Shown: positions 28,986 through 51,197 of the stretch, one piece after another
Layout of the letters: every line of letters starts with the position of its first letter
Numbering within the stretch: position 1 is the first letter of the stretch
NCBI RefSeq assembly: GCF_964204645.1
Contig: NC_134029.1
Location: 310,001 to 374,000 of the forward strand
Direction: 5' to 3'
Length of the DNA stretch: 64,000 nucleotides
Source of the DNA: Tubulanus polymorphus
Lineage: Eukaryota; Animalia; Nemertea
Notes under the pieces: generated by a model
What the model was told of the DNA's origin: nothing
Database searches by the model: none
The model's input: the letters and a program-made list of their open reading frames with translations, nothing else
Made by a program: the position numbers and the translations under genes

Positions 28986-30213
28986 TATCTACTTCCAAAC
29001 CTGTTATTCAACTCGTGGGCCTCGGATTTATCATAAAGTAGTTATAACACCGTCTTACGTGACCATTTTTACAGTTATATAAATTCACTGTACTCGCTGT
29101 CAATGTCGTCACACTCGTCTCTGATTGGTTGAGTAGTCGTGCTCGCTGGCTGTTCCATTATCTAATCCTCCCGCTGTTAGCTAGGGTTAGGGTTACTGGT
29201 CACCGCGGCTAACCCTAACCCTAGCGGCGGGGAGATGTACGAACTCGGAACCGATGTAAATATCAACAGTATTACGAAACACGTGGCGGTCAAGGTCGCT
29301 ATGTGGATAAACTACGGTAGCCTATGAGGGTTAGTGGTTATATAAAATGTAGACAGGTTATATAACTGGAACCCACACAGTCGATATCTAACGCCTCTCT
29401 TCTTAAAAATTATATTATTACGCAATTCAAAAAGAGTTATACGTGCCGCATTGCACATAACTAGGGCTAGGGTTAGGTAGGTGTACCGTAAGGATTTTAG
29501 ATGGAAGGACACTGCCTCACAACCTTGCTGCACCGCGACTCAGGATTGGCTCTCATCCCCTTAACCTTTGGGAACCAGACACTCGCTAAAGTGACTGTCA
29601 TCATGACCTCCATTAGTCAGTAACCTGTCTGTGGTTTAGTTTCACGATCGGATATTTTCACACAAGCCCATCCGATTATAAAAAGCTTACCACCAATGAT
29701 TAGGTAACTAACTAGACCTCCATGTACTTAGATTCAGGATTGACTGAGTCCTCTAGTCCACAATAAACTCAACTAAACTGTTTAAATAGCAATGGATTTA
29801 TAAACTGTCTTTTATTTACAGAACCTCAAAAAAAAATTAATTATATACAATACTTTTTTTTAATTAATACATTATTAATTACACCAACACTGACTCAATA
29901 CAATACAATTATAACTGTTATTTCACAATAGTGGCCACAAACACTTTTATATTCACTGTGTACAGTCACAGTTAAGTCCAGAAGAGGTATTTAATCTAAT
30001 TACAACTGACTGATGAAACTGGCTCCAGGATCCTGTAACTGCTAACAAAGTCTTTCTGGGGGGTAACAAGCTTAACCAGTCGACTCTAGTGACAATATTC
30101 TGATCCATTTATCACTTTTAATTAACACTCTTTTACTTATAAATTAACACCCATGATTCCAGAGTAGAGAGTAGTATACCTGGTACTGGTTATTGTAAGT
30201 TAAACGATGAAGT

Positions 30214-33200
30214 TTAATCCTGTATTTTTAAAATGCTGTGTTTTTCTAAATCTTCCATATCTTTCAATACGTGGGCGACGTTGTATCGTAATTCATGAAA
30301 CTTCGACATCGGCACCTGCAAAAAATATATACAAAATACATGAAAAAGTGCCGGTCAACAATATATAAATAATCAGCTAAAATACATCAATACAGTGACA
30401 CAGGTGGAAGTTGTCATAGTCGGGAGGATGGTTACACTGATAACTTATCCAAATGACTACTTGAACTTAACTAAGTAAATTGAATTAGAAATACAAATTA
30501 GGACTTAAAACTTCCAGATGATGCCGGTAATATGGATGATTTATCAGGTGTTTGACTTATATTGAAAATCGAATCGGAAACAAAAATTAGAACTTCAAAA
30601 TAGAATTGACTTCAGTAATGTGACAATTTACTGAATTCGACTGCAATACATTAAAATCAACCCTAAAATCAAATTTTAAAGAATCAACTCACATTAACAA
30701 GATTAATATTTTCTAACTCGTTGAAAAATTTAAGACTTTTTAGAATTTTTCTGGCGTAAACTTTCTTGTAAACTTTTAATACGTTGATCGATTTCGAAGA
30801 CGGACATCGAAGATTCTGATTGGCTGTCGCTCCTGTACGGTTCTATCGGTTGTTTTTTTAAATGACTTGCTCCGCGGTATTTCTTCAGAGGTTTCTCGTT
30901 GAAATACTCCGGCGACAAACTCTCTAAATAAAGCACGCGATCTTCCAAACCGCGAATCCTAGCGTAAACATCTTTAGAATTTTCTGGACCGATCGGAGGA
31001 GATATTTTCAGATGTTTTTCTAAATTATCCAATCGTTCGTTGAGAGCTGTCGATGTTATACTCGTATCGCGTTTGTTCGTATTGTTACCGGTTGCCGAGA
31101 TACGAGTTTGCGGACCCCATGGATTAACGACCCGCCACACTTTAACGTGGCTGTTACCAGTAGCAGACGGATGAAAACGGGCGTCCGTACGGGCGCAATT
31201 AGTCGTCGATTCACCGCTCATTTCACGCTCGATGAACTGACCACAGAATTCACGTCTGTTTAATTCATCGACCTCTAAACGCTTGCGTTGAATGAATGAA
31301 TTAATTCGTCTGTCTATTTCCTGTTTATTCGCTTGAACTTGAACTAAATTCCTGTCTAACTGTCTATCAGAGCCACCTGGTGGTGGTAAATCCTTCAACT
31401 GTTCATTAACAGTTACATCAACTAAATTTACAGTCATTCCTCCAACAGTGTCCACATCAGCTGCTCCAGATGTGTGGCCAGTCGACCCTCCAGCAACACC
31501 AGTCAGCCCTCCAGCAACACCAGTCAGCCCTCCAGCAACACCAGTCAGCTCTCCAGAACTCTGATCAGCGATCTCTTTTTCTTCTCCAGTTAGTCCTCTC
31601 TCTGCTCCATGTGTCGTGATATCCATAAGTCCTGCAGCTGGATTGATTTGTTGCTGCTGAAATTGAGTTCAGATAGAGATAGAGATTGAGGTATTTATTC
31701 CACAGGATCCATCGATTCATCGCTCCTCACATATTCCCATGATCACCTACAAACCAAACAGTCTTAACTTCAGGGGTTTCATCGAAATTTTCCTACCTCA
31801 AAATTATGAATATTGCCGTCGCTCAAAGTCATCTCCATAGCAACTGATGGTTCTAAAACTCGGTTTAACGAACTGTAAAGGAATAAAGTTTAATTCGAGT
31901 TTAACACGAGATTAGTTGTAGTAGGATATAGTGTCGGAGTAATAACAGACCTGGTTGATATAGCGACGTCAACTCTCCAGTTTAAACTGTCTAATCTAGG
32001 TAAACGTGGACGACTATCACAAACTTTCTCATCTAAAACGGCTCTCCTTGAAACAGCAAAACAAATCTCTGAGTCAACTCTTAACTTAACCCTTTCAGTG
32101 CGGTGTATGAATCGGTGATGTATTTTGCTAGTACATCGCATTGCGGTGTATTGAATTAGTATTTAGTTTTTATCTCTATTGAAAGATGGTAGCACCTGTC
32201 AAACATAGTGAAATATTAGTAACTAACGATACACCGCGCCGCGGTGTAGACGGTATTCCCATTATTCAACACACTAGGGTGGAATTTTTCAAAATTTTCA
32301 AATTATCTCCAGCACTATAGGGTATTAATTAGTCAGCACTGAAAGGGTTAAGACAAGCTTTGTATCTAGGCGTTGTTCCCAAACAGTTTATAGGCGGGGG
32401 CACGTGTTCATCGTACGGTATTCACACTAACTTAAGACATGTTTAGAGTTAAGTATTAAATCTGGATTGATGCCATGTCTGGGCAACTGGTACTACAGTT
32501 TAATCTTGCTAAACAACTGCGGAACTGGGGTTAGTAGGATTAGGGCTAATGATACTGAGGCTATAGTTGAACTAGGTCGAATTGGTTAGGATCTAATGGA
32601 ACTAGGTCGAATGAGTCCGATAACTTTCTGATTCACTCACTTTGATCCAAAAACAGCGCTTGAAATCAATGGAATGAACTCTTCAGGAATTCTGTGAATA
32701 AAAATATAAGTTGTTCAAAAACTCTTGTTCTTGGTTTCAATAAAGTCAACTTAAAATGTTAAAATGGAACTTACTTTAATTCTTGTAAATCTTCATTAAA
32801 TGTTTGTTGTTTAAGTGAAGTGATTGGAATGCGTAAAGCCAGCACTAACAGTGAATATAAACCTGAATATAAAATCCTCACTAATTCCTCATTTAAACTT
32901 TCAGTTAAAACTTCATGTTGAAAATCAGTTACACCGATTTCTTTTCCTTCTAAATCAGAAACAGCAACTGAAATAAAGAATAAAATAGATTTAATTACAA
33001 CGTATTTATCAGTCAATCTAATTCAACGAACCACCAGTCCCAACCAGCCCTGGAACTGGAAGGCCGAAGAAGTACCTTCTAACTTCTTCAGATCGAAACT
33101 GACTTATACATTATACAGTGGAGAATTAGGCCCGGTTTGGCAGACAAAGGGTTATTCTCGAGTAGGAATATGACATGCCAGGGCCCCACACAGTCAGTCA

Positions 33201-33428
33201 GGGGGGTGTATTTTAGGGACCTGTCAAAAGCTAGTGCCTGGTATTTTTTATTACATCTGTTACACAGTAATTTTACTCACTTTGCAATAGTTTTATAAAT
33301 GTCGGTTTTTTCACCGTTTTTAAACATTTCACCATTGATTTAATTTCAGTCGGGATTCTGGATCCTGTAAACAATGTGCGGTCGCTGATTGATTTACCGC
33401 CAGATCCTGTCACTTGTATTATCGACAT
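30214..33428 (-). CDS. COMMD5: COMM domain-containing protein 5 (221 aa)
   Basis: Exons 33428-33281, 32967-32775, 32691-32641, 32046-31951, 31872-31797 and 30315-30214 splice in frame. COMM domain LNWRVDVAISTSSLNRVLEPSVAMEMTLSDG..FEVPMSKFHELRYNVAHVLKDMEDLEK. Confidence 0.93.
30730..31626 (-). CDS. MBIP: MAP3K12-binding inhibitory protein (ATAC complex subunit), intronless, inside the last COMMD5 intron
   Basis: VQVQANKQEIDRRINSFIQRK, CARTDA, SHVKVWRVVNPWGPQTR, ERLDNLEKHL and RIRGLEDRVLYLESLSPEYF match conserved MBIP blocks. Confidence 0.92.
   Translation of the reverse strand: MDITTHGAERGLTGEEKEIADQSSGELTGVAGGLTGVAGGLTGVAGGSTGHTSGAADVDTVGGMTVNLVDVTVNEQLKDLPPPGGSDRQLDRNLVQVQANKQEIDRRINSFIQRKRLEVDELNRREFCGQFIEREMSGESTTNCARTDARFHPSATGNSHVKVWRVVNPWGPQTRISATGNNTNKRDTSITSTALNERLDNLEKHLKISPPIGPENSKDVYARIRGLEDRVLYLESLSPEYFNEKPLKKYRGASHLKKQPIEPYRSDSQSESSMSVFEIDQRIKSLQESLRQKNSKKS
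32090..32347. mobile_element. piggyBac-type MITE, second copy
   Basis: TTAA target-site duplication, CCCTTTCAGTGC TIRs, interior similar to 25547-25805. Confidence 0.88.
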
Positions 33429-33551
33429 GGTTTTTGAGGAGCAGCTAACAGAAACTACACCCTACTCAAAATCGGTACAGCTACACCTCAACAACTGCCT
33501 CACTTGCCGCAGTAACTGGTAGTCTGAGAATATCCGTATAAATCGAACAAA

Positions 33552-34112
33552 ATGAACCAACAAGGAATTCAAACGCGATCTATGTAAGTTCAATATTTAA
33601 ACAATATATATGTTCGATTTTTCCTTGGTCTAGGTCTATAATTCTGGCCTTATTTAACCCGTGATTCAGATATTAATCGAAGCCCATTGTCTCCTCGATT
33701 GCCACTACATAATTTAGAGGGCGCCACTAGCCGGCACTGAATTAAAATGTCTCGGGTTTTCTATTTTTTATAGGGATCAAAATGATGACGGAGGTGGAAG
33801 AGTTGCTAAAACGATTTTCACATTCAGTATGCTCGTATTAGTTGTACCTATAGCCGTATTTTTCTTATCTAAGTCATTTGTATTTGAAGGTAAGTGGTAG
33901 TCGTCTCTTTATCGTCCGGTCTCCTATGAATCAAGCCAGAAATCTGATGTTTGTATTACTGTTTTTTCTTTTCAGGAATGTTGAGTTATGACAGTAAAAC
34001 TAGCTACTACTACTCGGCTATAGTAGCAGTAGTTACTGTACAGATATTACTGGGAATGTTTGTATATGTCGCGTACAGTGAAGGAGATTCTAAACCAACA
34101 AAACAGGATTAG
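33552..34112 (+). CDS. VMA21: V-ATPase assembly factor VMA21 (absent from the ORF track)
   Basis: Exons 33552-33583, 33774-33889 and about 33976-34112. Two TM segments (TIFTFSMLVLVVPIAVFFLSKSFVFEG; YSAIVAVVTVQILLGMFVYVAY) and a C-terminal KQD as in animal VMA21. Confidence 0.88.
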
Positions 34113-34519
34113 ATTCCCTACATTCCACGTGCAACTGGCTTTAAACTACAATTTTTAATATCTGCAGTTTTATATTCAGTCTCTGAGAATTTGTAAATAA
34201 ATGAAAGCAATGAATATAAATTAATCAATTCACTTAAAAATGTATATACATGTCATAAATGTAAATAAATTAAATACATGTAGATTGTTGACAATTTCTT
34301 TTAATCTGCCGACATTCACAGATAAGAAGATGAGGATTGAAGATATGGGACTATGTTTATGGCCAAAAATTAGGAGAAAGGAGTCGTCAAAAGACCAAAC
34401 AAAATATCAGGAGACATTAAATTACAGTTTTATTTTTTAATAAATATGAACAATTATTATAAATGTAAGCCCTCTATTTGTATCTGCAGAGAAGTAAATT
34501 AATGAATATCGCGGATTAT

Positions 34520-35975: not shown

Positions 35976-36684
35976 TTTGATTTTTGAACGACACCCTAAA
36001 AAATAAAAATTTTACATGGGCGCAGCCATCTTGAAAATTGCTCCACACGAGCGCTCAATTTAAATTCGAAACTTTATTGCTCACAAGTTGTTCCTAGTGC
36101 GTATCTATCATCAGCTTGTACTACATGTACTGAATATGCGAACTTATTCAGATGAAATAGTCGATGTTTTAAAATTGGACTAGGTATAAGTGCGGAATGT
36201 GTGATTAATTTGGTCACTTTCTGCTGAATTTCTCTATATCACATGACGTTTAGAACTAAACACGGAAGTGAATCAATTTTTGTTGCAAAACTCTCAAAAT
36301 TGAACCACAAAAACAACTTGACAAGGAACAAAACTTCACTCTAACTAAAAAGGTCTGTAATATGATTATATACGAGTTGATAGAATCACTGTAGATTCGT
36401 CAAGAATGAAGAAATTCAGTCTGAAATGTCGAAAATTTACTCGCACTCACTTGCCACAGTAGGAATGAAGTGTCATTGTCTGAAATATAAATAACATCGA
36501 TTGTTTTTATTTTCAACCAATGAGTCAATGTTTGTGAATTGGTAGAAGTAGGTCTATTATCCAGGAATTCTGAAACTACTCGCGAGACTAAAAGAAAGAC
36601 TAAAAGAGACTAAAAAAAGTGAATTCAACTTTCAGATCCGTACTTGTTCTGTCTCGTCCCTGTGGGCAGCAAGATTTGGTGAAA

Positions 36685-38485
36685 ATGCCGATATTGTTTG
36701 GAGTAATCGCTCGAGGGCCGACTGTTTTAGCGAAGTACGCGAGTTGTGCTGGTAATTTTACGGAGGTCACTGAACAGATTTTAGCAAAGATTTCTCCGGA
36801 AAATGCAAAGTTAACGTATTCACACGGCAGGTAAAACTCATTTGTTAGAGCCTCACAATCTCACAACGATAGCAGCGGACATTTTCTCAAAATTTGTTTC
36901 AAGTTCACCCAAATAGCCCACTGATATCAGAGATAATCACAATAAAAACTGCATTACTCTGTCTCTATATTATCTATGTGAACTGAAGCTTATGGATTCC
37001 CTGATACCAGTGTTTAGAGCAAGATTCTTACAGGGGATTCTGCTCGTTGCATAGAAGGGAAAAGTTGGGTTAAATAATTGTAACTCTATTTGATTGTTTT
37101 CAGTTATCTGTTTCATTATATCAGTGAAGAGAGGATTATCTATCTATGCATATCAGACGATGTAAGCATTTCAACCCATCAAAATATTCTCAACATCTCA
37201 ACAACTTGATAATTTCAATAAAATCTCTGTTTTCTAGGATTTTGAACGCTCAAGGGCTTTCTTATTCTTAAATGACATCAAAAGAAGGTTGGTCAAAACT
37301 TTTGAAATCCTGAACAAGTTTGAATGGAGACCAGTATTAGTTATAAATAAGTATATATTTAGATTTCAGAGTCAGTTTGGAAGTCGAAGTCAAACAGCTC
37401 TTCCGTATGCGATGAATAGTGAATTCTCTCGAGTTTTAGCTTCACAAATGGTAAGTGAGAGACTCGAGGGTCACAAGAGGAAGTCAGGAATCTGATAAGG
37501 GAGTCAGGAATCAAATTAGGGAGTCGGGGATCTGATAAGGGAGTCAAGGATCAAATTAGGGAGTCAGGAATCTGATAAGGGAGTCAGGGATCAGATAAGG
37601 GAGTCGGGGGTTGAATGAGGGTTAAACTGGTATCGTGGGCTTGTGTTCATCTGGTAAAACAAATTTCTTTTTCAGAAACATTTTTCAGAAAACAGAAATG
37701 TAGATCAAATCAGTAAAGTTCAAGGTGAAGTGGACGAATTGAAGGGAATTATGGTGAAAAATATTGGTAAATAATGAAATATTTGAGAATCTTTGAAAGA
37801 TTCATAATTTGAGAATCTCAGATATATCGACCTGTTTATTGTAGATAATATCGCAAACCGAGGAGAGAAATTAGAATTGTTGGTCGATAAAACTGAGGAT
37901 TTATCTGCAAATGTAAGTAATTACATAACCGCTGTCTCATCCTACTGTCTATTCCTACTGTCTCATCCTACTGTCTCATCCTACTGTCTATTCAACTGTC
38001 TATTCCTACTGTCTCATCCTACTGTCTCATCCTACTGTCTCATCCTACTGTCTATTCAACTGTCTATTCCTACTGTCTATTCAACTGTCTATTCCTACTG
38101 TCTCATCCTACTGTCTCATCCTACTGTCTATTGAACTGTCTATTGAACTGTCTATTCCTACTGTCTATTCAACTGTCTATTCAACTGTCTTCTCTACTGT
38201 CTATTACCACTAAAGTTCTGAATATCCACTTGTTTTTATAGTCCGTTACATTCCGGAGAACCAGTCGTAATCTTGCTCGTTCGATGTGGTGGAAAAACGT
38301 TAAAATTACAATCATTATCGCCGTTGTGGTTATTGTGAGTATTCAACTGTAAAATTACATTTGTTACATCATCTTATTCAATATTTCACAAATTTTATGA
38401 CAGAAATGATTTCTATTTTTAGGTGATTTTATATTTCATTATTTCTGCGTCTTGCGGGGGATTAAATTGGCCGAATTGTGTGTGA
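36685..38485 (+). CDS. VAMP7: Vesicle-associated membrane protein 7 (longin R-SNARE)
   Basis: MPILFGVIARGPTVLAKYASCAGNFTEVTEQIL, TALPYAMNSEFSRVL, SNARE motif RGEKLELLVDKTEDL, a TM segment and CGGLNWPNCV*. Confidence 0.96.
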
Positions 38486-39417
38486 GATAAGACGCTCATC
38501 AGACGTGTTGAGGTGTATTTGTGACGCTTTGCTTATAGAGCGCCACCTGCTGGAGACTTGTCTCATTAGCAGAAAAACCCACAAACGAAATCAAAAGCTA
38601 CAAAAACATTGAGACTCGCCGAGTTGAAACGTCAGATATTTTGATTATGTTTTTCTGTTAATTAAGACACAGTGAGACTAAAACCAATACTAATAGTTTG
38701 AACCCTTTAAACATACAATCTGTTACACTGTATTTTATATGCATCACACTGAAAAGCTTTATAAATCTTGTAATACAGTTTAAATACATCGTATATTCGT
38801 GCAAATAGTTTAATTCATTGAGACAATCAATGATTATCATTACTTCATGTTTATGTTTGAGAAGTTTATTAAATTATTTGATAATTCTCGAGGGTCTGGA
38901 ATCAAATCTCTTTAAATAATTGTAAAATATTCTCAGATCTGGTGCTGATGAAAATTCATATGAAATGTGATAAAATGGAGAAATTCTGTTTTGATAATTT
39001 GTCTCCTCTTTGCATTAATCAAACTGTTTTGACAATAATTCAATATATTTCATCCATTAGTTCAGTTTGAATTTAAACTATCCTCAAATTGTCTTCATTA
39101 TTATTGTGTAAATAATGTAAACGTATTCGAATATTTTATGTATAATTTTGTAAATAAAACATGATAATATAAATCAATGATTGAAAAAGTTGATCTTAAT
39201 CTTAAGGTGACGTTCTAAGTTGACCGCAGCCTAAGAGGCACGTTGACTGGTTACCAAGCTCTGCAACCAGTCCATCAACACGGAAGATAGAAACTGGTAA
39301 CCAGTAGGGGTTGTGAATTCTGCTGGTCCTCGGGGGAAACGTATTCTACCCAATTCTATTGCTATAAAAAACTACAAGAAAAAATTTTTGATTCGATACA
39401 ACATTTAATCTTGTCTA

Positions 39418-42400
39418 TCACCGTTTTTTATAAAGACACGGAAGTAATGAAATATTGGGAGGCGTTTTGTTGATTCTACTTTTGGTTTTACCGGAAATTT
39501 CTGTTTTCTTGAATTCCAAAATTACAAACATTTTATTTGAAGTGTCCTAAAAAAAGTTGAGACAAAAATATATGAGAATCAAGGGAGAGGAGCAAGGTGG
39601 GGAGAGAAGCAAGGAGGGGACGGATAAGGGGAGCTAGGAGAGGAGGATGAGGGGAGGGATGAGGGGAGCAAGGGAGGCAGCAAGGAGGGGAGGGATGAGG
39701 GGAGCAAGGGAGGCAGCAAGGAGGGGAGGGATGAGTGAGAGGTTGATGAGGGTCAAACTCATTAATATAAAACTTTACCTGTGAAACAGTTGTGAATCCT
39801 AAACTTTCAACATTTATACAGAATTTGTGGACATTTTCAAATCTACTGATGACTTCAGCAATTCTCATAGAACCACTGAAAAATGATAATGTGATAAAAT
39901 CCATGAATATTGAACGATGAGAGGGACGATGAATGAGAGGGAGATATTTACCCAGGTTTAAGAACGCGACGAGCTTCAATCAGAAAATCGGCCAAATTTG
40001 TTCCCATCAACGATAAACAAAATATCACTACATCGACAGTTTCATCGTCTAGAGGAACCTGAATAATTAATCAGCCATTTACACAACATAGTCAACTGAA
40101 CAGGATGAACTGAATACTGAATGATCTGAACAGGATGAACTGAATACTGAGTGATCTGAACAGGATGAACTGAATACTGAATGATCTGAACAGGATGAAC
40201 TGAATACTGAATGATCTGAACAGGATGAACTGAATACTGAGTGATCTGAACAGGATGAACTGAATACTGAATGATCTGAACAGGATGAACTGAATACTGA
40301 ATGATCTGAACAGGATGAACTGAATACTGAATGATCTGAACAGGATGAACTGAATACTGAATGATCTGAACAGGATGAACTGAATACTGAATGAACTGAA
40401 CAGGATGAACTGAATACTGAATGATCTGAACAGGATGAACTGATACTGAGTGATCTGAACAGGATGAACTGATACTGAATGATCTGAACAGGATGAACTG
40501 AATACTGAATGATCTGAACAGGATGAACTGAATACTGAGTGATCTGAACAGGATGAACTGAATACTGAGTGATCTGAACAGGATGAACTGAATACTGAAT
40601 GATCTGAACAGGATGAACTGAATACTGAGTGATCTGAACAGGATGAACTGAATACTGAATGATCTGAACAGGATGAACTGAATACTGAATGATCTGAACA
40701 GGATGAACTGAATACTGAATGATCTGAACAGGATGAACTGAATACTGAATGATCTGAACAGGATGAACTGAATACTGAATGAACTGAACAGGATGAACTG
40801 AATACTGAATGATCTGAACAGGATGAACTGAATACTGAATGATCTGAACAGGATGAACTGAATACTGAATGATCTGAACAGGATGAACTGAATACTGAAT
40901 GAACTGAACAGGATGAACTGAATACTGAATGATCTGAACAGGATGAACTGAATACTGGATGAACTGAATACTGAATGAGCTACTGTAACAACTGCTACTG
41001 TAACCGAGAAAATACTAAAATACCTTTGACATATCACAAGGTGTAATGTGTTCATTGACTTTAACGAGATCAAATGAATGAACAGTGTTTTTGACTGATT
41101 GAGCGATTTGAGCTTCACCGCATCCGAAATCACCGATCACAAAACTAGACGGTCTGAAAATCATAAAAAACATCGATTAAAATCTAACGCTACCACTGGA
41201 CACAAACAGAGTGAAAATAATGATCCAGTTCCACAGTTCATGGTTCAAATTCGAGTCAAACTTACCCAGAAACTTATGAAACAAATACGATTAAAATACT
41301 CACTTTGATTTGATATATTTAATCATGTCGTCCTGTGGATTTTTTGGCCATTTTTCCACCTGTGTTTGATATCCTGTATGATAAACTTCGAACGATTGTG
41401 GATCATTTTTAAACATTTCGAACGCCTCACTTCCTGTGCACGTATATAACTGTTCATTTAAATAACGGAACCTGTAATTCATCAGAGAAATTATCATTAA
41501 TTCACACATGAAAAAACTTTATACCTAAATAAACTCCGCCCATTTCTCCCACCTGGCTGTCTGTAATCTGTCAATCATTCTCTCTCTCAACGGTAAAACT
41601 TTCTTCCCTCGTTTACCGGCTGTTACAGGAATATCATCTTCACTTTCATCTAAACCACTATCCTCCTCATTATCATCACTTTCTATAGGTTCAGGCTGTT
41701 TCACGAGTTTCAGAATTTTCTTTACCTGAGCTTGGTTTGTTTGCTGTTTTTTACTGTCTTCAGTTGAATCTTTAGCCTTTTTATCTTTTTGTTTTTCTTT
41801 CTTCTTTAAATCTTTCTTTGTAATTGAGACAGTTGTCGTTTTAGAAATATCACCCGTTTTAGAGTGAGTCTCCTGTTTTAGTTTTGATAGATTCTGGTTT
41901 TTAGGTTGGTTCTGTTTTGTTTTATTCTGTGTTATTTCATTCTGTTTTGGTAGATCTTGTTTAGCTTGGTCCTGTTTTGGTTGATCTTGTTTCCTATTTT
42001 TCTCTGAAATCTCTTCAACTGATTTAGTATTATTTTTTCTTTTCTTTGCTTTCTTTATAACGCCACCACCACTCTCCCCTGCTGCTACTGCTGCTGCTGC
42101 TGCTGCTGCTGTGTCTTGCTGCTTGTTTTTAGTTATGTTTATTTTCAGAGAAGGTACTATCTGACTAGGAAGCTCTCCGTGTAAAATCTTCTCACATTTC
42201 TCTTCTCTCGTTAAACCCGCTAAATGACTGTATTTATTTCTAGATCGAGTTTTCTTCTTTTTCTTTGTCTTCTTATCTTCCACAGAAACATCTTCCAACT
42301 CGGGTGATTTTGATTCTGTTTCTTGATTACGTTTCTTCTTTACTTTCCCTCGTACAGGTACAGTTTTCTCCTCATGATCAACTTTATCAACTTTTATTTT

Positions 42401-42741
42401 CAGTTTTTTAGAAGTTTTTTTGTTGGGAGAATCTTCATGTTTATGTTTCCTGTTTGTCTTTGAACCTTCCTGCGGCGTATTATCGACATTGTCATTGATG
42501 ATAAGTTTCTTGTTTGTTGGTTTCGGGAGTTTAGTTTCTTTAATTGCGCATTCATGGATCTTTGATGCCTTTTTCATTAATTTTTTGTCCGCCTTCTGAA
42601 AATACAAATAAATAGTATATGAAGAAGGAATCAGGAAACCACACACAACACAAGATAAGATAGTAGAGACTGTTAGTGTTAGTGTTGAATTTGTATTATT
42701 TTTTGTTTTTGTTTATCACGCACCTGTCGACTGTCAGTGTC

Positions 42742-42772
<31 letters not shown>

Positions 42773-42846
42773 GAATTACCAAATAAACTACTATTTAACT
42801 GATCTCCAACTGAACTAGAATTCCACGATGATTCAACCGCAAACAT
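39418..42846 (-). CDS. RRP8: Ribosomal RNA-processing protein 8 (nucleomethylin)
   Basis: Lys-rich N-terminus, [41 protein letters not shown] and PCLYKKR*. Confidence 0.95.
40075..40975. repeat. Intronic 30-bp minisatellite, about 29 copies
   Basis: Unit ctgaacaggatgaactgaatactgaatgat. Confidence 0.97.
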
Positions 42847-42877
42847 TCTGTCTCAATACTCAATTTAACGCGTGATC

Positions 42878-42992
42878 ATGGGCGCTGACATGTTTACGGT
42901 GCATTCTGGGCAAATAATGGGCGCTGACATGTTTACGGTGCATTCTGGGCAAATAATGGGCGCTGACATGTTTACGGTGCATTCTGGGTAAT
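42878..42992. promoter_or_regulatory. Triplicated 39-bp unit with ZNF143/Staf-like sites in the RRP8-ILK bidirectional promoter
   Basis: Three copies of atgggcgctgacatgtttacggtgcattctgggYaa. The reverse complement CCCAGAATGCA matches the Staf/ZNF143 core. Confidence 0.55.
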
Positions 42993-43376
42993 TACTCATC
43001 CTCTGAAACTTGGATGAAATTGCCTCAATTCAACAGGTAAATAACTGATTTAATGAAGTTTAGACGCGTTTAAAAGTGAGTTGATATCGTAAAGAATCGT
43101 TCAGTGTTTTATAAATATCGTTTTGATTTTTGAAATCTCTGTAATTTTAAACAACGATCACAGCTGTCAAAATATCAATCCAATCAAATTCAATTTTATT
43201 CCGACTATTTTTAGTACACAATCTCTTATTTCTACCTCTTGTTATAATTTCTATAGGTTGAATTCTAAAAGTTTCGGTGAGCCATTCTAGATTCTAAAGT
43301 GGTTTATAATTGGACAGATTTTCGATTTTTGCGTCTGTCTTGCTAATTAGCCAACGTTAGGAGAGAAGGAGGAAGA

Positions 43377-46300
43377 ATGGATGATATATTTGCGCAAGTG
43401 AAAGAAGGAAATGCGTTTAACGTGAGATTGTGGTTGGATAATACAGAGAATGATCTCAATCAGGGGTAAGATATCCCTACCCCAACCCAACACACAGTTT
43501 ACTGTGACCTGTTTTATATTGATGGTTGATGTATTGTATTTTGAAGAGATGATCACAGGTTTAGTTTGTTACATTGGGCCGCTCGTGAAGGACGCACTAA
43601 TATAGTCGATATGCTGATACAACGCGGTGCCAGAATAAACGCCACTAATATGGGTGACGATACTGCCTTGCATCTAGCCGCAGCTCATGGACATAGAGAT
43701 ATCATCATCATGGTGAGTGCCAGATCACAGTCCGCGGTGGTCCAGATCACAGTCCACGGTGGTCCAGATCACAGTCCGCGGTGAACGAGATCACAGTCCA
43801 CGGTGGTCCAGATCACAGTCCACGGTGGTCCAGATCACAGTCCGCTGTGGTCCAGATCACAGTCCACGGTGGTCTAGATCACAGTCCACAGAGATCCAGT
43901 TCATAGATTATGTTGTATTTTCAGTTATTACACAATAAAGCTAATATAAACGCAGTGAATGAACACGGAAATACTGCTCTTCATTACGCATGTTTCTGGG
44001 GACAAGATCAAATAGCTGAGGTCAGTAACTCTCCTTCCCCTCTCCCTCTCTCCCTCCCTCTCCCTCCCCTCTTTTCCCTCTCCCTCCTCCCTCTTTCTCT
44101 CCCTCTCCCTTATCCCCTCTCCCTCTGTCTCCCTACCTCCCTCTCTCCCTCTCCCTTATCCCCTCTCCCTCTGTCTCCCTCCCTCCCTCTCTCCCTCTCC
44201 CTTATCCCCTCTCCCTCTGTCTCCCTCCCTCCCTCTCTCCCTCTCCTCCCTCTCTCCCCTCTTTCCCTCCTCTCCCTCCCCTCTCCCTCTCTGTCTCCCT
44301 CCCCCTCTTTCTCTCCCTCTCCCTTATCCCCTTTCCCTCTGTCTCCCTCCCTCTCTCTCCCTCTCCTCCCTCTCCCTCTCTCTCTCCCTCTCCTCCCTCT
44401 CCCTCTCTCCCCCTCTTTCCCTCCTCTCCCTCTCCCTTCCTCTCTTATCTTCATTGAATTCTGGTGTTGATATTTTGTTGAATTATTTCAGGATTTAGTC
44501 AATAACGGAGCCGTTGTAGCTTTATGTAATAAATACGGTGAAACTGCTTTGGATAAATCGAAATCATATCTGGAAAAAATACTACGAGGTTTGTGAATAT
44601 TGTTAGAATCAATGAATCCTCGGAGAGACTCACTCGCTGCTAGTGTGGTGTTTATCTGAATCCTGAGGATATTTAAACCGGATTAGGCTAATCTTTTAAT
44701 CTGATTTCCAGAACGTGCTGCTTCATTGGGTCAAGATTTGAATAAGATACCGTTTCAGGATCGCAGTTGGTTGGGATATAAAACGAGAAGTCGTGAGTTT
44801 TAATTTCTTGCTCCTCGCTGAAAACTGATCGATATTCTGTGTAATGTATTGATTGATTTATTTATAGGAGATGCTACTCTCTCTCGTCACACTGGTATCG
44901 ACATCGCGCAGTTAAATCTTCACACTAAAATCAGTACTAGTCATTCTGGAGAGGTAAATTTCGCACTAGAATTTTTACCGCAGTAAGAGACAAGAGTCTA
45001 CTGTATTCCTAAAATTCTTACTCAGTATTTGACACCAATTCGGGGTAGAATTTTACCGGTCTTAACTTCACTGCAGTAAGAGACAGAGTCTACTGTATTT
45101 AACAAGTCTTACTCAGTATTTGACACCAACTCTGTCATGAAGCAAGACTGTCTAATATATTTGTGTTTCTACTATATAGTGATTAAGGCTCACTGATTCT
45201 ACGACACGCTGTTTAATTGAACTGATATTTGATACTGTGTTATAGGTTTGGAGAGGAACCTGGCAGAATAATGATATAGCAGCTAAAATACTAGCAGTAA
45301 GAAGAGTAACGATGAGAAACTCAAGAGATTTCGCTGAAGAATTTCCTAAACTCAGGTTCACTAATATTCCACTCAACTCCTGTCTATCTCTTATGATTGA
45401 TTCATCCTGTTATTGTGAGCTTCAATTATATATTTCAGGATTTTCAATCATCCTAATATTTTACCAGTTCTCGGTGCTTGTAATCAACCTCCGAATTTAG
45501 TGGTGATTTCACAGTTTATGCCGTATGGGTCGCTGTTTAATGTGTTACATCAGGAAACAGGTAACTATCTCCCCCCTCATCTCTCTCCTCTCTATCTCCC
45601 CTCATCTCTCTCCTCTCTATCTCCCCTCATCTCTCACCTCTCCTCTCTATCTCCCCTCATCTCTCACCTCTCCTCTCTATCTCCCCTCATCTCTCTCCTC
45701 TCTATCTCCCCTCATCTCTCACCTCTCCTCTCTATCTCCCCTCATCTCTCCCCTCTCCTCTCTTCCTTCTTTCACTTGTCTTTTCTCACTTCTTTTCCTC
45801 CCCCTCTCTAACCTCACTCTCTCCTCTGTCTCTTCTCATTCTCTCCTCCCTCTCTCACTCCCTCCTCTACTCCTCTCTCACCTCATCACTCTCTAATTTC
45901 CTCCCCTCTCTCTGTCTCTCCCCCTCTCTCTTCTCGTTGCACCTGACATTGTTAATATGGTAACACTGTGCTGTATTTCAGGATTAGTGATAGATCAAGC
46001 TCAGGCTTTGAGATTTGCGTTAGATATAGCGCGTGGAATGGAATTTCTACATTCAATGGAACCGATGATACCAAATATGCATTTAACCAGTAAACATGTT
46101 ATGGTAAGTTTATATTTCAATTTATAATGAAGCTTTTAATAAAAAATACAGCTAATGTTTAATTAAAACAGTCTAATGCCTTATTGAAATAATGGCTTTA
46201 ATGAATTTATGATAAAACTTTTTGATAATTGCTGTTTATTTAAAATGTGTTCTCACAACAATTCAAGCTTCGATGTAAAAAAACACAGACACCCGCCCGC

Positions 46301-48103
46301 TGGCCGTGCTTATTTCACCCCCCGGAGCAGACACCCGCCCGCTGGCCGTTGTTATTTCACCCCCCCGGAACAGACACCCACCCGCTGGCCATGCTTATTT
46401 CACCCCTCATGGATCTGATTCACTTGTTGTAGAATTGTGATAAAACTATTGAATTTACAGATCGATGAAGATTTAGCTAAAATAAACTTTGATGATCCAA
46501 AGTTTATATCACGTCGTCGAGATGGAGCTGTAACGCAGGGGGTAAGGGGTCGGTCACCTGCTATTACTGCTGTCAAAACACTGCTTACACTAACACTACA
46601 TCGTCAGTACTACTCACTCTGTTACTATGGAGTCTGTTACTATGGAGATCATTTCTGTTAATCTTTTAGGCTAGAAAAATATCTAATTTTGAAAACAAAA
46701 TAATCTTCATTTGGTTGTCACGGTGATGTGAGTGAATTGCTTGTCGCTACCTAGTTCTGCCTCTCATTGCCATGGTTACTAGCTGTTCTGGAGCTTACGA
46801 TGCGTGCGCAGTAACTTTTAGATGATAACACTTTAGGGGATGGGGAACTAACAATGTGTGTGTTGTCATGGTGACGCCGGATTACCGATTGATTGATTGC
46901 CTGTCTGTCGCCTGTCACTCAATGTCTGTCCTCAGATTCTGTATTCATGAATAACATCTGTTACTTACTTCAGAGTTTTATTTCAGCTTAAATTCTGTAA
47001 TTTTACTGTTTTCATACTAATTGAGATGCGTTCACAGTTCACCTCGTGTTTATTAACCCTTTACCCTTTTAAGTCCCCCACCCCCCAAATTCAAAGAGCA
47101 ACTGTTTTATTTACTAAATACTCGGCATAAACCCCTCAATTCCATTCATCCTGTATTCGATGGATCTTGCTTGTCTATTTCTAAATCTTGTCACTTTCAA
47201 TCAACTGAACTCCAGTTCCACATTTGAGTTAAAATTGATTCTGGAGTATATAATCAACTCTAAATGGAGACCCACTGTGGACCTGGCTCCTCATATCAAT
47301 CTTACGCCTTTTGATAATCTCATTAAACTCAACCTCGATAGTTTTATAGTGAACACTATTCAAATCAACATTTCATCAGAAAGTTTTATCGATCTGTTTT
47401 TTTAGGTCGACGAAGATCTGACGGCCAGAATCAATATGGCCGACTATAAGTTCACATTTCATGAGAGGGGTAAATTTTACGCGCCGGCTTGGCTCGCTCC
47501 TGAAGGTTGGTATGAATTGAGTAGTACAGCTCCGCCGGTGTTTCTGTTCTGATATGATGATTGTTTTGTTTATTTCTGCAGCATTACAGAGAGACCCCGT
47601 TGATTTAAACATACGAGCTGCTAATATGTGGAGTTACGCTATTCTACTGTGGGAACTAGCTACGAGAGAGGTTCCGTTCGCTGATCTCGCTCCGTTAGAA
47701 ATAGGCATGAAGGTAAAGAAACTGTGTTCTGGACCCTGCAGCTGTGGAACCGGGCCCTACGGCCGTGGAACCGGGCCCTGCGGCCGTGGAACCGGGCCCT
47801 GCAGCTGTGGAACCGGGCCCTGCAGCTGTGGAACCGGGCCCTGCAGCTGTGGAACCGGGCCTTGCAGCTGTGGAACCTGGCCCTGCAGCTGATCCTGTGT
47901 CTGTGTGAAAACGTCCGTCAGTTAATTATCTGTTGTATTTATAGGTGGCGCTAGAAGGATTACGGATTACGATCCCGCCAGGAATCTCACATCACATGTC
48001 GAAACTAGTGAAAATCTGTATGAATGAAGATGCAGGAAAACGACCTCGATTCGATATGATTATTCCTATACTGGAACGCATGAAACAATCAGCTAATAAT
48101 TAA
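43377..48103 (+). CDS. ILK: Integrin-linked (pseudo)kinase
   Basis: [13 protein letters not shown], ankyrin repeats ([38 protein letters not shown]) and a pseudokinase domain ([51 protein letters not shown]). Confidence 0.97.
46461..46541 (+). CDS. Candidate alternative 81-nt ILK cassette exon
   Basis: TTACAG|[27 protein letters not shown]|GTAAGG, phase 0-0. Paralogous to the canonical exon 47406-47505 ([16 protein letters not shown]). Confidence 0.6.
47732..47891. repeat. Intronic 21-bp minisatellite
   Basis: Unit tgcagctgtggaaccgggccc, about 7.5 copies. Confidence 0.95.
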
Positions 48104-49965
48104 ACAGGGATCCTAGAGTGGTAGGAGTGAGGAAGAGTGGGGAGTGGGGGAGTCAAGAAGTCATGGAGTGGAAGGGGAGTGGGAGAGAGAGGGGGAGTGG
48201 GGGAGTCAAGTATTCATGGAGTGGAAGGGGAGTGGGATAGAGAGGGGAGTGGGAGAGTGAGGGGGAGTGGGGGAGTCAAGTATTCATGGAGTGGAGGGGG
48301 CAGGAGACAGTGGGGGAGTCAATAGTCAGAGTGGGGGGGGGGGGAGGGGAGAAGAAAGGTTTTTAAATAAAAGTGAAATCATATTTGGAAAAGTACTTCG
48401 ACGTTTGTTATGTGAACAGTGTCAGAATCAATGAACCCTCAGTACAGATTAAGACTCACTTCGATTGTGTGGTTTTTATCAGGTTTGAATCTCTTTTAGT
48501 GGATGGGTGGAAGAGTGGGAGGGGGGTCAGTGAAATAAAGGGGTGGCGAGTCAGTAGGAGAATCCACGGTGGAATATGAAACGTCAGTAGAATAATGAGG
48601 TGTTTTAGAAACAGTTTAATGAGACAGAATTTTGAGATTGAGAAATAAAACATTGAATCCTGTATTGAATGAAAGTATTAAAACTATTATAAAATCTCAG
48701 TTGTTTCTGTGAGATATAAATAGAAATGTAGTAAATTTTAGTAATTAATTTATATATGAAATTATAACATCTATAACTCTAATTCTATTAAACACTTCTA
48801 TTGTTGTGTGTTGAATTTCATACGTCATTGTATTCAAATCAATACTAAAGTAGCCTAGGCAACGTCCAAATGAATTGATTTATTCTTGCTGAGACAGGAA
48901 AGCATGTAAAAAAAAACTGCTGTACTATGAAATATACTGATGCAAAACATTTAGTTCGTTTTTTAAAAGGCATTTATAGTAACAATATATAAACCTGTTT
49001 GCTACCTGTGACTTGTATCTACTTGAAATCGTTTTTTTTGTCCTTTGTTCATGTTTTTTTTTACCTTATTGCTGATAAAATTATTATAATGAAATATTTC
49101 ACTTTGGTGCTAGATTTTATAGAATATAAGACTGAAGTTGAGCCTCGGGAATCATGTCACACTAATTCTGGATCATGCAGACAACTAGAGGGTTTAAACC
49201 AGAAGGCTTAGATTTAAGACCTGTGCTAAGCCCATTCTGGAACTCAATCTATATACTTTTTAAGGTCAAGTCTTAATAAACAATGTTAGACATGAGGCTA
49301 GTTGTACAAACGACTGGGTCCAGTTGCAAAATCGAGACTTAAGTCCAAAAGTAGTAAATCTTAAGACTGGTCTTAAGTTGTTAGATTGGCTATATACTAA
49401 GTTGGTCTACTCTTAGACTGGTCTTAAGTCTAAGCCATGACTATGCAACTGCACCTTGGCTTGCCCTAATTTACGTCTTAAATTCTATTGTCATCATATA
49501 TAACTATATAAAAACATAGTGTATTGTATATCATTGATAACATTATGATTAGAGGTCGTAGCTTTGAATATAGATATATTATTACTAATAAACTATTGAT
49601 ACTCTGAAATTAATAAACAAATAAACTACAGTTAATTCGATGAGTCGTTATTGCTGTATTATTTATTTCTGCACGTCCAGTCTATTGCTACGTGAGGCGA
49701 AGGAGTTACAGCAGTTTTAAATCGAAGTGTCTGTATAGGAGTTTCCACCCTTTTCTTTTTATATATATATAGTACCAGCGATACTGGATGATCTAAGCTA
49801 CAGTTCACCCCAAACTTCAAACACGAGCCCCTGTGGATTTATAGAAAGGAGAATTGATTGCCGACAAAGGTAGACTGTGACCTAGGGGAACGCGCACCTG
49901 CTGAGCTACTAGCAAGTGCGCGTTCTTTGTATTATGAGTAACTATTCGCGCTGCCGTTTCAACGT

Positions 49966-50037
49966 GCCGTGATCGTCTAGAGGTTAGGACATTGCGTTGT
50001 GGCCGCAATAACCCAGGTTCGAATCCTGGTCACGGCA
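49966..50037 (+). tRNA. tRNA-His (GTG)
   Basis: GCCGTGA/TCACGGC acceptor stem, TTGCG-TTGTGGC-CGCAA anticodon arm, CCAGG-TTCGAAT-CCTGG T arm, and a T6 Pol III terminator at 50041. Confidence 0.96.
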
Positions 50038-50222
50038 TCATTTTTTATCGCTCAATCAAAGTATTTTCGATTCATTTTTGAATTAATTCTTATGTTTTCG
50101 TGCATTTTATTTTTTCATTGACGTTGGTTATACTGATTTTTAGTAAAATCACAATATATTCGTTCGTTGGCGCGCACACTGCGTCGGTCGTTGTCGCTCC
50201 AACTCCGATTTCCTATTTCATC

Positions 50223-51197
50223 CTAACGCTGGTTGCAGACTTTTTCGATGAAATATGCTCGAATTTCTTTTCCGAGTAAAAGATATATGTAAAAATTAAT
50301 GGCGTAGTTACAAACGTGCAACTGTGTGAAAACATCTAAATAGAATTCCTTCAGCTCCCCGGTTAGTGGTATGAAAGCGCTGACTGACGTCGGGAGGGTG
50401 AACATTGCAAATGCGAGTGAAACTGTTACAAGCATTATTGTCGTACGTTTGGATTTTGCAGTTTTCTGATCGGACGAAACCATTTTTAAACCTCTGAATA
50501 ACTGAATTATTATAGCAGAATTTGATGTGAAAATCAAAACCAGCGGCAGGAAATAAACGTAGACGATGATTGAAATATTGAACACGAATTGGTTAAATAA
50601 TACATAATTGAAACCAAATATTGGGAGAGAGAAATATAAAATCGTCGGTAGAACGCATATAACTAACGTATTAACTGCAGAAATTGAAACGATGACGCTT
50701 CGAGCGAATTTCGGTGTACATATCAAACGAGATGTGAACGGGAAGAGAACAACTGCCGCTCGTTCTAGAGATATCGCTACTATCAACCACGAACTGGTAG
50801 CTCCCATAAATGACATTATAAATTCGTAGATTTGACAACTGATCAGTGAATTCATGATGAATATAGGACCGGTGTTTAGATGCAAGAGAACAAACTGTAA
50901 AACAGGCATCAGTGTGAAACTGATACAGACGAGAAAATCGCATAAAGATAAAACGATCAGATAGTTAGCGTAAGATAAACTGCGGAATCTGCGACTTATC
51001 ATTATCACGAAAACGGCTGAATTTCCGAAGGCGCTCAGTAGGAATATGATTGGTAGAGTACATAGTGATATTGTACGGTATCCATCGGACTTGTTCTCCA
51101 CAGACATGAGGACGATATAACTGAGATAAGGTCTGCCAAACTGCATTTCAGTTGAATTCATAATTTCTGGAAGTTCTCCTCCTGAGCTCTGAAACAT
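50223..51197 (-). CDS. Class A GPCR, orphan peptide-receptor/chemoreceptor-like, paralog 1
   Basis: 7 TM pattern, GN in TM1, LSLCD in TM2, SLER at the DRY position and NYAINFYIY in TM7. Single coding exon. Confidence 0.88.
   Translation of the reverse strand: MFQSSGGELPEIMNSTEMQFGRPYLSYIVLMSVENKSDGYRTISLCTLPIIFLLSAFGNSAVFVIMISRRFRSLSYANYLIVLSLCDFLVCISFTLMPVLQFVLLHLNTGPIFIMNSLISCQIYEFIMSFMGATSSWLIVAISLERAAVVLFPFTSRLICTPKFARSVIVSISAVNTLVICVLPTILYFSLPIFGFNYVLFNQFVFNISIIVYVYFLPLVLIFTSNSAIIIQLFRGLKMVSSDQKTAKSKRTTIMLVTVSLAFAMFTLPTSVSAFIPLTGELKEFYLDVFTQLHVCNYAINFYIYLLLGKEIRAYFIEKVCNQR

Follow-up and report, generated by a model that had tools for sequence, protein, structure and literature searches.

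MBIP as a cassette exon of COMMD5 in the nemertean Tubulanus polymorphus

Retrocopies that act as alternative exons or form chimeras with a host gene are of a known kind, which includes jingwei and TRIM5-CypA among others (PMC5408686, PMC2279257). In TRIM5-CypA (TRIMCyp; owl monkeys, Asian macaques) and in jingwei an intronless copy derived from complementary DNA (cDNA) lies in or beside the host gene in sense; through alternative splicing the copy is connected in frame with upstream host exons and replaces the C-terminal part of the host, with the normal isoform still possible (PMC2279257, PMC5408686). A different kind of fusion is described for MBIP: human MBIP and the Drosophila MoaE-MBIP protein are subunits of the ATAC complex, and the Drosophila fusion, Mocs2B/dMoaE (CG10238), requires its MBIP sequence and not its MoaE domain for incorporation (PMC9228816). 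Both systems resemble a locus from the nemertean Tubulanus polymorphus, which lies in a window of 64,000 nucleotides (nt) of DNA (NCBI RefSeq assembly GCF_964204645.1, contig NC_134029.1, positions 310,001 to 374,000 of the forward strand; positions below are counted from the first letter of the window). This window contains a six-exon COMMD5 gene on the minus strand, running from an ATG at 33428 to a stop at 30214, and an MBIP open reading frame (ORF) inside the last COMMD5 intron. An initial annotation made from the letters of the window proposed that MBIP is an in-frame cassette exon of COMMD5; both inclusion joints and the skip joint are now found in RNA contigs, and RefSeq models the same product.

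The Tubulanus insert is, like the TRIM5-CypA type, an intronless copy in sense that is spliced in frame to upstream host exons and replaces the C-terminal part of the host; however, it is an internal cassette with a donor of its own, for which the last exon of the host would serve as 3' untranslated region (UTR). The parent MBIP gene is gone, and the chimera would thus be the only source of a conserved housekeeping domain and not an extra new gene; the hallmarks of retroposition have been erased, and no adaptive function is known. In contrast to known retrogene chimeras, both partners are conserved single-copy housekeeping genes. With the insect Mocs2B/dMoaE the Tubulanus protein shares a C-terminal MBIP domain placed behind an unrelated, otherwise independent protein; the front partner in Tubulanus is instead residues 1-188 of COMMD5, the fusion is optional through cassette splicing rather than constitutive, and it truncates the dimerisation domain of the partner.

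Anatomy and splicing of the COMMD5-MBIP locus

Exons 1-5 of COMMD5 total 564 nt, or 188 codons, and the last residues encoded, NFE, are followed by the donor GTAGGA. The MBIP ORF (31626-30730, minus strand) is intronless and uninterrupted over 298 amino acids (aa) and lies on the same strand as its host. A TTTCAG acceptor at 31662-31657 is situated 30 nt before the ATG of the ORF; the cassette, read from 31656, opens with QQQINPAAGL-MDITT in the frame common to COMMD5 exon 5 and the MBIP ORF, and an in-frame TGA (31671-31669) lies just 5' of the acceptor. The ORF ends with TAA at 30732-30730, and 37 nt later a donor, GTGAGT, is found at 30692-30687. The coordinates given in the initial annotation for the ORF, the phase of exon 5, the acceptor, the upstream stop, the donor, the 964-nt cassette and exon 6 all hold. 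The features of the unit, in the order of transcription and with the evidence for each, are as follows.

33281..33428, minus strand: COMMD5 exon 1, coding part; ATG at 33428-33426, 5' UTR unmapped; placed by sequence and frame, with joint 32967/33281 in RNA contigs
32775..32967, minus strand: COMMD5 exon 2 (HN domain); PDB match to human COMMD5 only, E 9e-6; joints in RNA contigs
32641..32691, minus strand: COMMD5 exon 3; joints 32691/32775 and 32046/32641 in RNA contigs; frame
31951..32046, minus strand: COMMD5 exon 4, in which the COMM domain begins; match to positions 1-19 of Pfam COMM_domain (E 3e-4); joints in RNA contigs
31797..31872, minus strand: COMMD5 exon 5; phase-0 end after residue 188 (NFE), branch point of the splice choice; Pfam COMM_domain positions 20-48, E 6e-3
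31657..31796, minus strand: intron of 140 nt from exon 5 to the cassette; candidate acceptor at 31747 (unused), AATAAA at 31699-31694, acceptor TTTCAG at 31662-31657
30693..31656, minus strand: cassette exon of 964 nt; 30-nt in-frame leader, MBIP ORF and 37-nt tail; both joints in RNA contigs; identical to RefSeq isoform X1
31478..31556, minus strand: tandem repeat of 21 nt, 3.8 copies, LTGVAGG units (Tandem Repeats Finder), within a non-conserved linker predicted to be disordered
30316..30692, minus strand: intron of 377 nt from the cassette to exon 6; donor GTGAGT at 30692-30687, no canonical poly(A) signal
30214..30315, minus strand: COMMD5 exon 6, coding part; 33 aa and stop, C-terminal COMM segment, 3' UTR in the inclusion form; RNA contig 29984-30315

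The use of these splice sites was assessed by comparing positions 29300-34300 (5,001 bases) with the assembled contigs of four public runs from one study, the library type of which is unrecorded. One of the four covers the region evenly at ~33x in unspliced, DNA-like form; two others are thin, low-depth and unspliced, and are also read as DNA-like. The remaining run has spliced contigs in which all five COMMD5 introns are removed, with CT..AC borders on the plus strand, i.e. GT..AG on the strand of the gene; due to this splicing the run is taken as cDNA. Each of the junctions predicted in the initial annotation (31797>31656, 30693>30315 and 31797>30315) is present in the contigs of the cDNA-like run:

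31656/31797, joint of exon 5 and cassette: skips 140 nt, depth 59; 136-nt contig reaching 30 nt into exon 5
30693/30315, joint of cassette and exon 6: skips 377 nt, depth 68; 809-nt contig of the cassette body covering 30690-31471
30315/31797, joint of the skip form: skips 1481 nt, depth 467

A 534-nt contig of COMMD5 exons 1-5 (depth 285), in which the other four COMMD5 introns are removed, stops exactly at the end of exon 5, from which two different joints leave; a graph assembler ends its contigs at such a branch. The cassette body has an RNA depth of 68, equal to that of its two junctions (59 and 68). The depth bins at 31638-31804 and 30302-30468 are explained by their exon parts alone, and the introns flanking the cassette are essentially without RNA k-mers; there is thus no sign of a transcript start within them, of use of the acceptor at 31747 or of intronic polyadenylation. 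The contig that spans 31656 leads into exon 5, and none of the loose ends listed falls there; within the limits of contigs, which drop rare forms, the cassette shows no sign of a start or an end of its own. Two outcomes named in the initial annotation as contrary to its proposal are therefore not seen: exclusive use of the 31747 acceptor has no visible trace, with essentially no RNA cover in the 140-nt intron, and an MBIP transcript with its own start and poly(A) site has left no sign, the cassette contigs running into exons 5 and 6. By depth, the inclusion form would amount to about one-eighth of the skip form (~12%), a ratio that is only indicative as contig depth is a poor measure.

Poly(A) signals within the last intron were also considered. 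No AATAAA is found on the minus strand from 30729 to 30316 (the MBIP stop to exon 6), where only weak variants occur, e.g. AGTAAA at 30632; this agrees with the claim that the rest of the intron has none. A minus-strand AATAAA at 31699-31694, which had been overlooked, is located in the 140-nt intron, 38 nt ahead of the acceptor AG (31658-31657); the cDNA-like run has no RNA cover to suggest its use.

RefSeq already models the fusion as LOC141905166, in isoforms X1 (496 aa) and X2 (482 aa) that are named only "uncharacterized protein". The chimera of ~496 aa that had been proposed from COMMD5(1-188) and MBIP matches XP_074650042.1 in length and junction, and the stored sequence has the junction NFEQQQINPAAGLMD, as predicted. 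The first protein search returned isoform X2, 95% identical over the full MBIP ORF, with isoform X1 as its cluster mate. Isoform X2 has 42 nt fewer than X1, which corresponds to two units of the 21-nt repeat; it was rejected as a splice form, as no GT..AG is found at any offset that the repeat allows, and the difference may be repeat-length variation or an alignment gap, perhaps allelic length variation. A G>C variant at 31472 is seen in all four runs, and contigs break at 31471/31551, at the tandem repeat.

Identity, origin and surroundings of the insert

Residues 86-296 of the MBIP ORF match 349 relatives in an exhaustive profile search, with E down to 4e-40. Eight of the best ten, when looked up, are named MAP3K12-binding inhibitory protein 1 (NCBI); the sources of the relatives looked up are scallop, Lineus, chiton, acorn worm, Lingula, abalone, starfish, amphioxus and newt. 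In an alignment of ten sequences all 37 invariant columns of the MBIP domain, conserved from ants to amphioxus, are kept in Tubulanus (37/37), and identity to the top matches from other phyla is 45-52%. Residues 1-85 are of low complexity, align to nothing and contain the 21-nt repeat; the conserved native N-terminal region of MBIP is missing from the ORF, which has no similarity to a MoaE or MoaE-like N-terminal region and is preceded instead by COMMD5(1-188). A Pfam search with the ORF gives no family, there being no MBIP model; a PDB search gives no solved relative, and a word-index protein search gives only its own cluster and one ant protein. On sequence comparison the ORF is identified as MBIP. 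When the whole 268-Mb assembly is searched in six frames, a single MBIP locus emerges, the present one, so that the genome has no source of MBIP other than the cassette; the case of a real MBIP gene elsewhere, which would have spoken against the proposal, thus fails.

Orthology of the host gene was established by searching the canonical COMMD5 exons one by one; the joined protein that was searched is the database's own fusion entry. The COMM domain (PF07258) is matched by exons 4 and 5 separately in Pfam and is also precomputed on the RefSeq fusion entry. In a PDB search residues 11-189 of the fusion align to residues 15-192 of human COMMD5 with E 4e-36, as opposed to 5e-6 for COMMD2 and 1.6e-3 for COMMD4; exon 6 aligns to human COMMD5 193-224 (E 2e-5), and for exons 2 and 6 alone only COMMD5 is significant. 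The COMMD5 part has 96 relatives, at most 57% identical, and most of those that are named are called COMMD5 by their sources. By these matches the host gene is COMMD5, closer to it than to the other nine COMMD paralogues, and it too is found at one locus of the assembly, the present one, in the six-frame search. Structures of the canonical COMMD5 of the Commander complex are available (PDB 8P0W, 8F2R). The skip isoform of Tubulanus encodes all parts of the canonical protein (exons 1-5 correspond to residues 15-192 of the human protein, exon 6 to its residues 193-224), and the six-exon structure is common to Tubulanus, oyster and Ptychodera; the inclusion isoform, in contrast, is without the segment that aligns to human 193-224. 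The loss of the C-terminal COMM segment suggested by the initial annotation is thereby upheld, the fusion stopping at the equivalent of human residue 192.

The standalone MBIP of vertebrates, molluscs, brachiopods and Lineus has the same C-terminal domain with its 37 invariant columns, but differs in having ~7-9 exons, no COMMD5 within 10 kb and the conserved N-terminal region that Tubulanus is without. In the nemertean Lineus longissimus MBIP is a 311-aa protein encoded by a 4-kb gene with seven or more coding exons, flanked by an HSD3-family gene and a P450 gene; the MBIP genes of scallop and Lingula are also standalone and multi-exon, the exon count over the three being ~7-9, and COMMD5 is absent within 10 kb of MBIP in Lineus, scallop and Lingula. 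Intron positions common to the three genes fall at ~104, 138-142, 161-167, 205-213, 245 and 272 in residues of the Tubulanus ORF; none of these shared positions, about six, is present in Tubulanus. The absence of all introns at once, together with the missing N-terminal region, points to a 5'-truncated retrocopy. The six-exon COMMD5 of oyster (Saccostrea echinata) and of Ptychodera flava has its last intron after the residue equivalent to 188, and MBIP is absent from that intron in both, with no gene called within either; the host intron is thus considered old and the insert new. The last COMMD5 intron is very long for a gene of ~220 codons in both species, at 14 kb in oyster (36229-50439) and 27 kb in Ptychodera (18165-45046).

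An exonised MBIP retrocopy that replaced a multi-exon parent gene appears, from these sequence comparisons, to be the best origin for the cassette. The MBIP mRNA would have been reverse-transcribed, probably with 5' truncation, and the copy would have landed in sense orientation in the last intron of COMMD5, which is ancient and of phase 0; an acceptor and a donor would have arisen afterwards, and the parent MBIP gene with its many exons would have been lost. The initial annotation had considered such an origin plausible, and the intron comparison lends it support, though neither a poly(A) remnant nor a target-site duplication is left: the insert is flanked neither by a run of at least 5 A nor by a direct repeat of at least 8 nt.

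Distribution of the fusion was surveyed with COMMD5(1-188) in a local phmmer search of the best 150 of the 349 MBIP relatives, among which no COMMD5-MBIP fusion other than that of Tubulanus was found; a MoaE front is carried by ~20 of these 150, and an ant MBIP relative with such a front is named molybdopterin synthase catalytic subunit by its sources. A Pfam search of ten long MBIP relatives found no COMM domain. Conversely, a search confined to long proteins with a COMMD5-like front gave only that of Tubulanus and a 385-aa model from Batillaria attramentaria. The latter was rejected as an MBIP fusion; it is a COMMD5 with an insert of ~155 residues between its HN and COMM parts, probably an intron retained in the annotation. 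The literature search on MBIP and COMMD5 gave nothing that links them beyond a gene list.

The surroundings of the unit show further features. A spliced gene on the plus strand (33780-34189) is arranged head to head with COMMD5; its intron at 33888-33973 has GT..AG borders and a depth of 315 in the cDNA-like run, and the ~350 nt between this gene and the COMMD5 ATG may hold a shared bidirectional promoter. At the opposite end the exon 6 RNA contig ends at 29984, a few bases past an ATTAAA at 29995-29990, and positions 29967 to 29801 have no RNA cover; an AATAAA at 29816-29811 is perhaps not the site in use, given this lack of cover. Very high-copy repeats are located at 32139-32472 (COMMD5 intron 3) and 29467-29800 (just past the 3' end of COMMD5), with summed contig depths of 1e5-2e5 in the DNA-like run compared to ~33 for unique DNA; many contigs break within them, at 32252/32351 and 29614/29662, and they are probably short transposable elements. 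A milder repeat occupies 30479-30637, in the intron after the cassette.

The fusion product and competing explanations

It is considered likely that the locus is one transcription unit with two protein outputs through alternative splicing, in which the fusion supplies MBIP and the parent gene was lost after retroposition. When the cassette is skipped, COMMD5 exon 5 would be joined to exon 6 to give the canonical COMMD5 of 221 aa, which is a subunit of Commander, the complex of endosomal recycling. When it is included, a 496-aa protein would result that consists of COMMD5 residues 1-188, a disordered linker of ~80-95 residues and the C-terminal MBIP domain; exon 6 would then become the 3' UTR and supply the poly(A) site, such that one promoter and one poly(A) site would serve both forms. 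The stop of the inclusion form lies 37 nt before the last exon junction, less than the 50-55 nt of the standard rule, and this form should therefore escape nonsense-mediated decay (NMD). Since there is no other MBIP in the genome and the cassette has no RNA start or end of its own, the worm most likely obtains its MBIP domain only via the fusion isoform, which is probably the only supply of it. The splice choice would in this manner decide between two complexes.

The COMMD5 part of the fusion (residues 1-188) retains the complete HN domain as well as the three COMM beta-strands; the final 33 residues of COMMD5 are lost. When the 496-aa entry was modelled with AlphaFold on a mixed alignment of COMMD5 and MBIP relatives, the mean predicted local distance difference test score (pLDDT) was 68.6; the model features a confident helical HN domain at residues ~20-145 and three strands of middling confidence at 152-189, followed by a region of pLDDT below 50 (residues 197-277) and a helical MBIP part with helices at 286-325, 387-404, 418-435 and 474-495. 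In published COMMD structures the segment encoded by exon 6 corresponds to the C-terminal helix that packs in the COMM dimer; without this helix the modelled fusion is doubtful as an entrant to the COMMD ring.

Several points weigh against the proposal of two outputs from one unit. RNA support comes from one run and one sample, in the form of assembled contigs with an unrecorded library type; such contigs lose rare forms and do not connect the cassette with the start codon of COMMD5 within a single molecule, which leaves room for an internal or alternative start site. The NCBI models may rest on the same reads and so may not be independent. No canonical 221-aa Tubulanus COMMD5 entry is found among the relatives returned by the database search, and annotation and contig depths therefore disagree on the dominant form. 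The fusion protein is predicted from the genome and RNA contigs, and without the COMM C-terminal segment it may be unstable. As for its origin, no hallmarks of retroposition are left, which is compatible with an old event, and we infer the mechanism from the derived intronless state.

The room left for another start site bears on the translation of a functional MBIP by itself from the ATG at 31626, by means of downstream-starting transcripts, reinitiation or leaky scanning, with the fusion as a by-product. The ORF keeps this ATG of its own, 30 nt past the acceptor, the contigs do not link the cassette to exon 1, and standalone MBIP is the rule in other phyla; however, 594 nt of open in-frame coding sequence extend from the COMMD5 ATG to 31626, so that scanning ribosomes would start upstream, and the cDNA-like run displays neither RNA cover nor a loose branch in the intron ahead of the cassette. 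Furthermore, as the native N-terminal part of MBIP is missing, the ATG at 31626 need not be ancestral, and separate translation is held to be unlikely. Still less probable is an independent nested MBIP gene with its own promoter and poly(A) site, for which the fusion joints would be minor read-through splicing. Such same-strand nested genes are common, and the layout, with an AATAAA at 31699-31694 ahead of the acceptor, is reminiscent of an upstream 3' end with an acceptor downstream of it; yet the cassette contigs pass unbranched into COMMD5 exons at both ends, a canonical poly(A) signal is absent between the MBIP stop and exon 6, and the cassette body matches its junctions in RNA depth (68 compared to 59 and 68). 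Spliced-leader trans-splicing is not known from nemerteans, which also counts against a nested gene.

An insert that is intronless and sits in an intron, and whose inclusion form is the minor one at ~12% by contig depth, could also be a decaying retropseudogene that is included through functionless splicing noise. This explanation is regarded as highly improbable: the insert is the only MBIP in the genome and has 298 open codons, it keeps 37/37 invariant residues at 45-52% identity to the top matches of other phyla, and its splice sites are consensus-like with a stop placed to avoid NMD. Its single-copy status together with the full conservation of the domain makes a dead retrocopy hard to uphold. 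Alternative splicing of one unit is thus preferred over these explanations, and by analogy with human MBIP and the Drosophila fusion the Tubulanus protein, as the most likely source of the MBIP domain, may be an ATAC subunit.

Implications for MBIP and for gene fusion by probable retroposition

The claim is a modest one, limited to a single species and to a general type of chimera that has precedents. For annotation, LOC141905166 can receive a name, and the canonical COMMD5 isoform is to be added. The locus offers a clean case, open to dating, in which a retrocopy took the place of its parent once it was an exon of a host gene, and genes of the Commander (endosomal recycling) and ATAC (histone acetylation) complexes would here depend on a common promoter, a common poly(A) site and a single splice decision. 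It is also a second independent case, after the insect MoaE-MBIP, of an MBIP domain behind a foreign N-terminal partner; such partners bear on which part of MBIP is really needed by ATAC.

A further step, which is raised tentatively and held to be rather doubtful, is that the fusion is a working MBIP in which the HN domain of COMMD5 has replaced the lost MoaE-like N-terminus, with the splice choice setting the dose of ATAC versus Commander subunits. If the fusion does work as MBIP, it might form a physical bridge between part of COMMD5 and a chromatin acetyltransferase complex; the locus would then be a natural experiment in which the MBIP domain is seen to tolerate unrelated proteins in front of it, namely MoaE in insects and COMMD5 in this nemertean.

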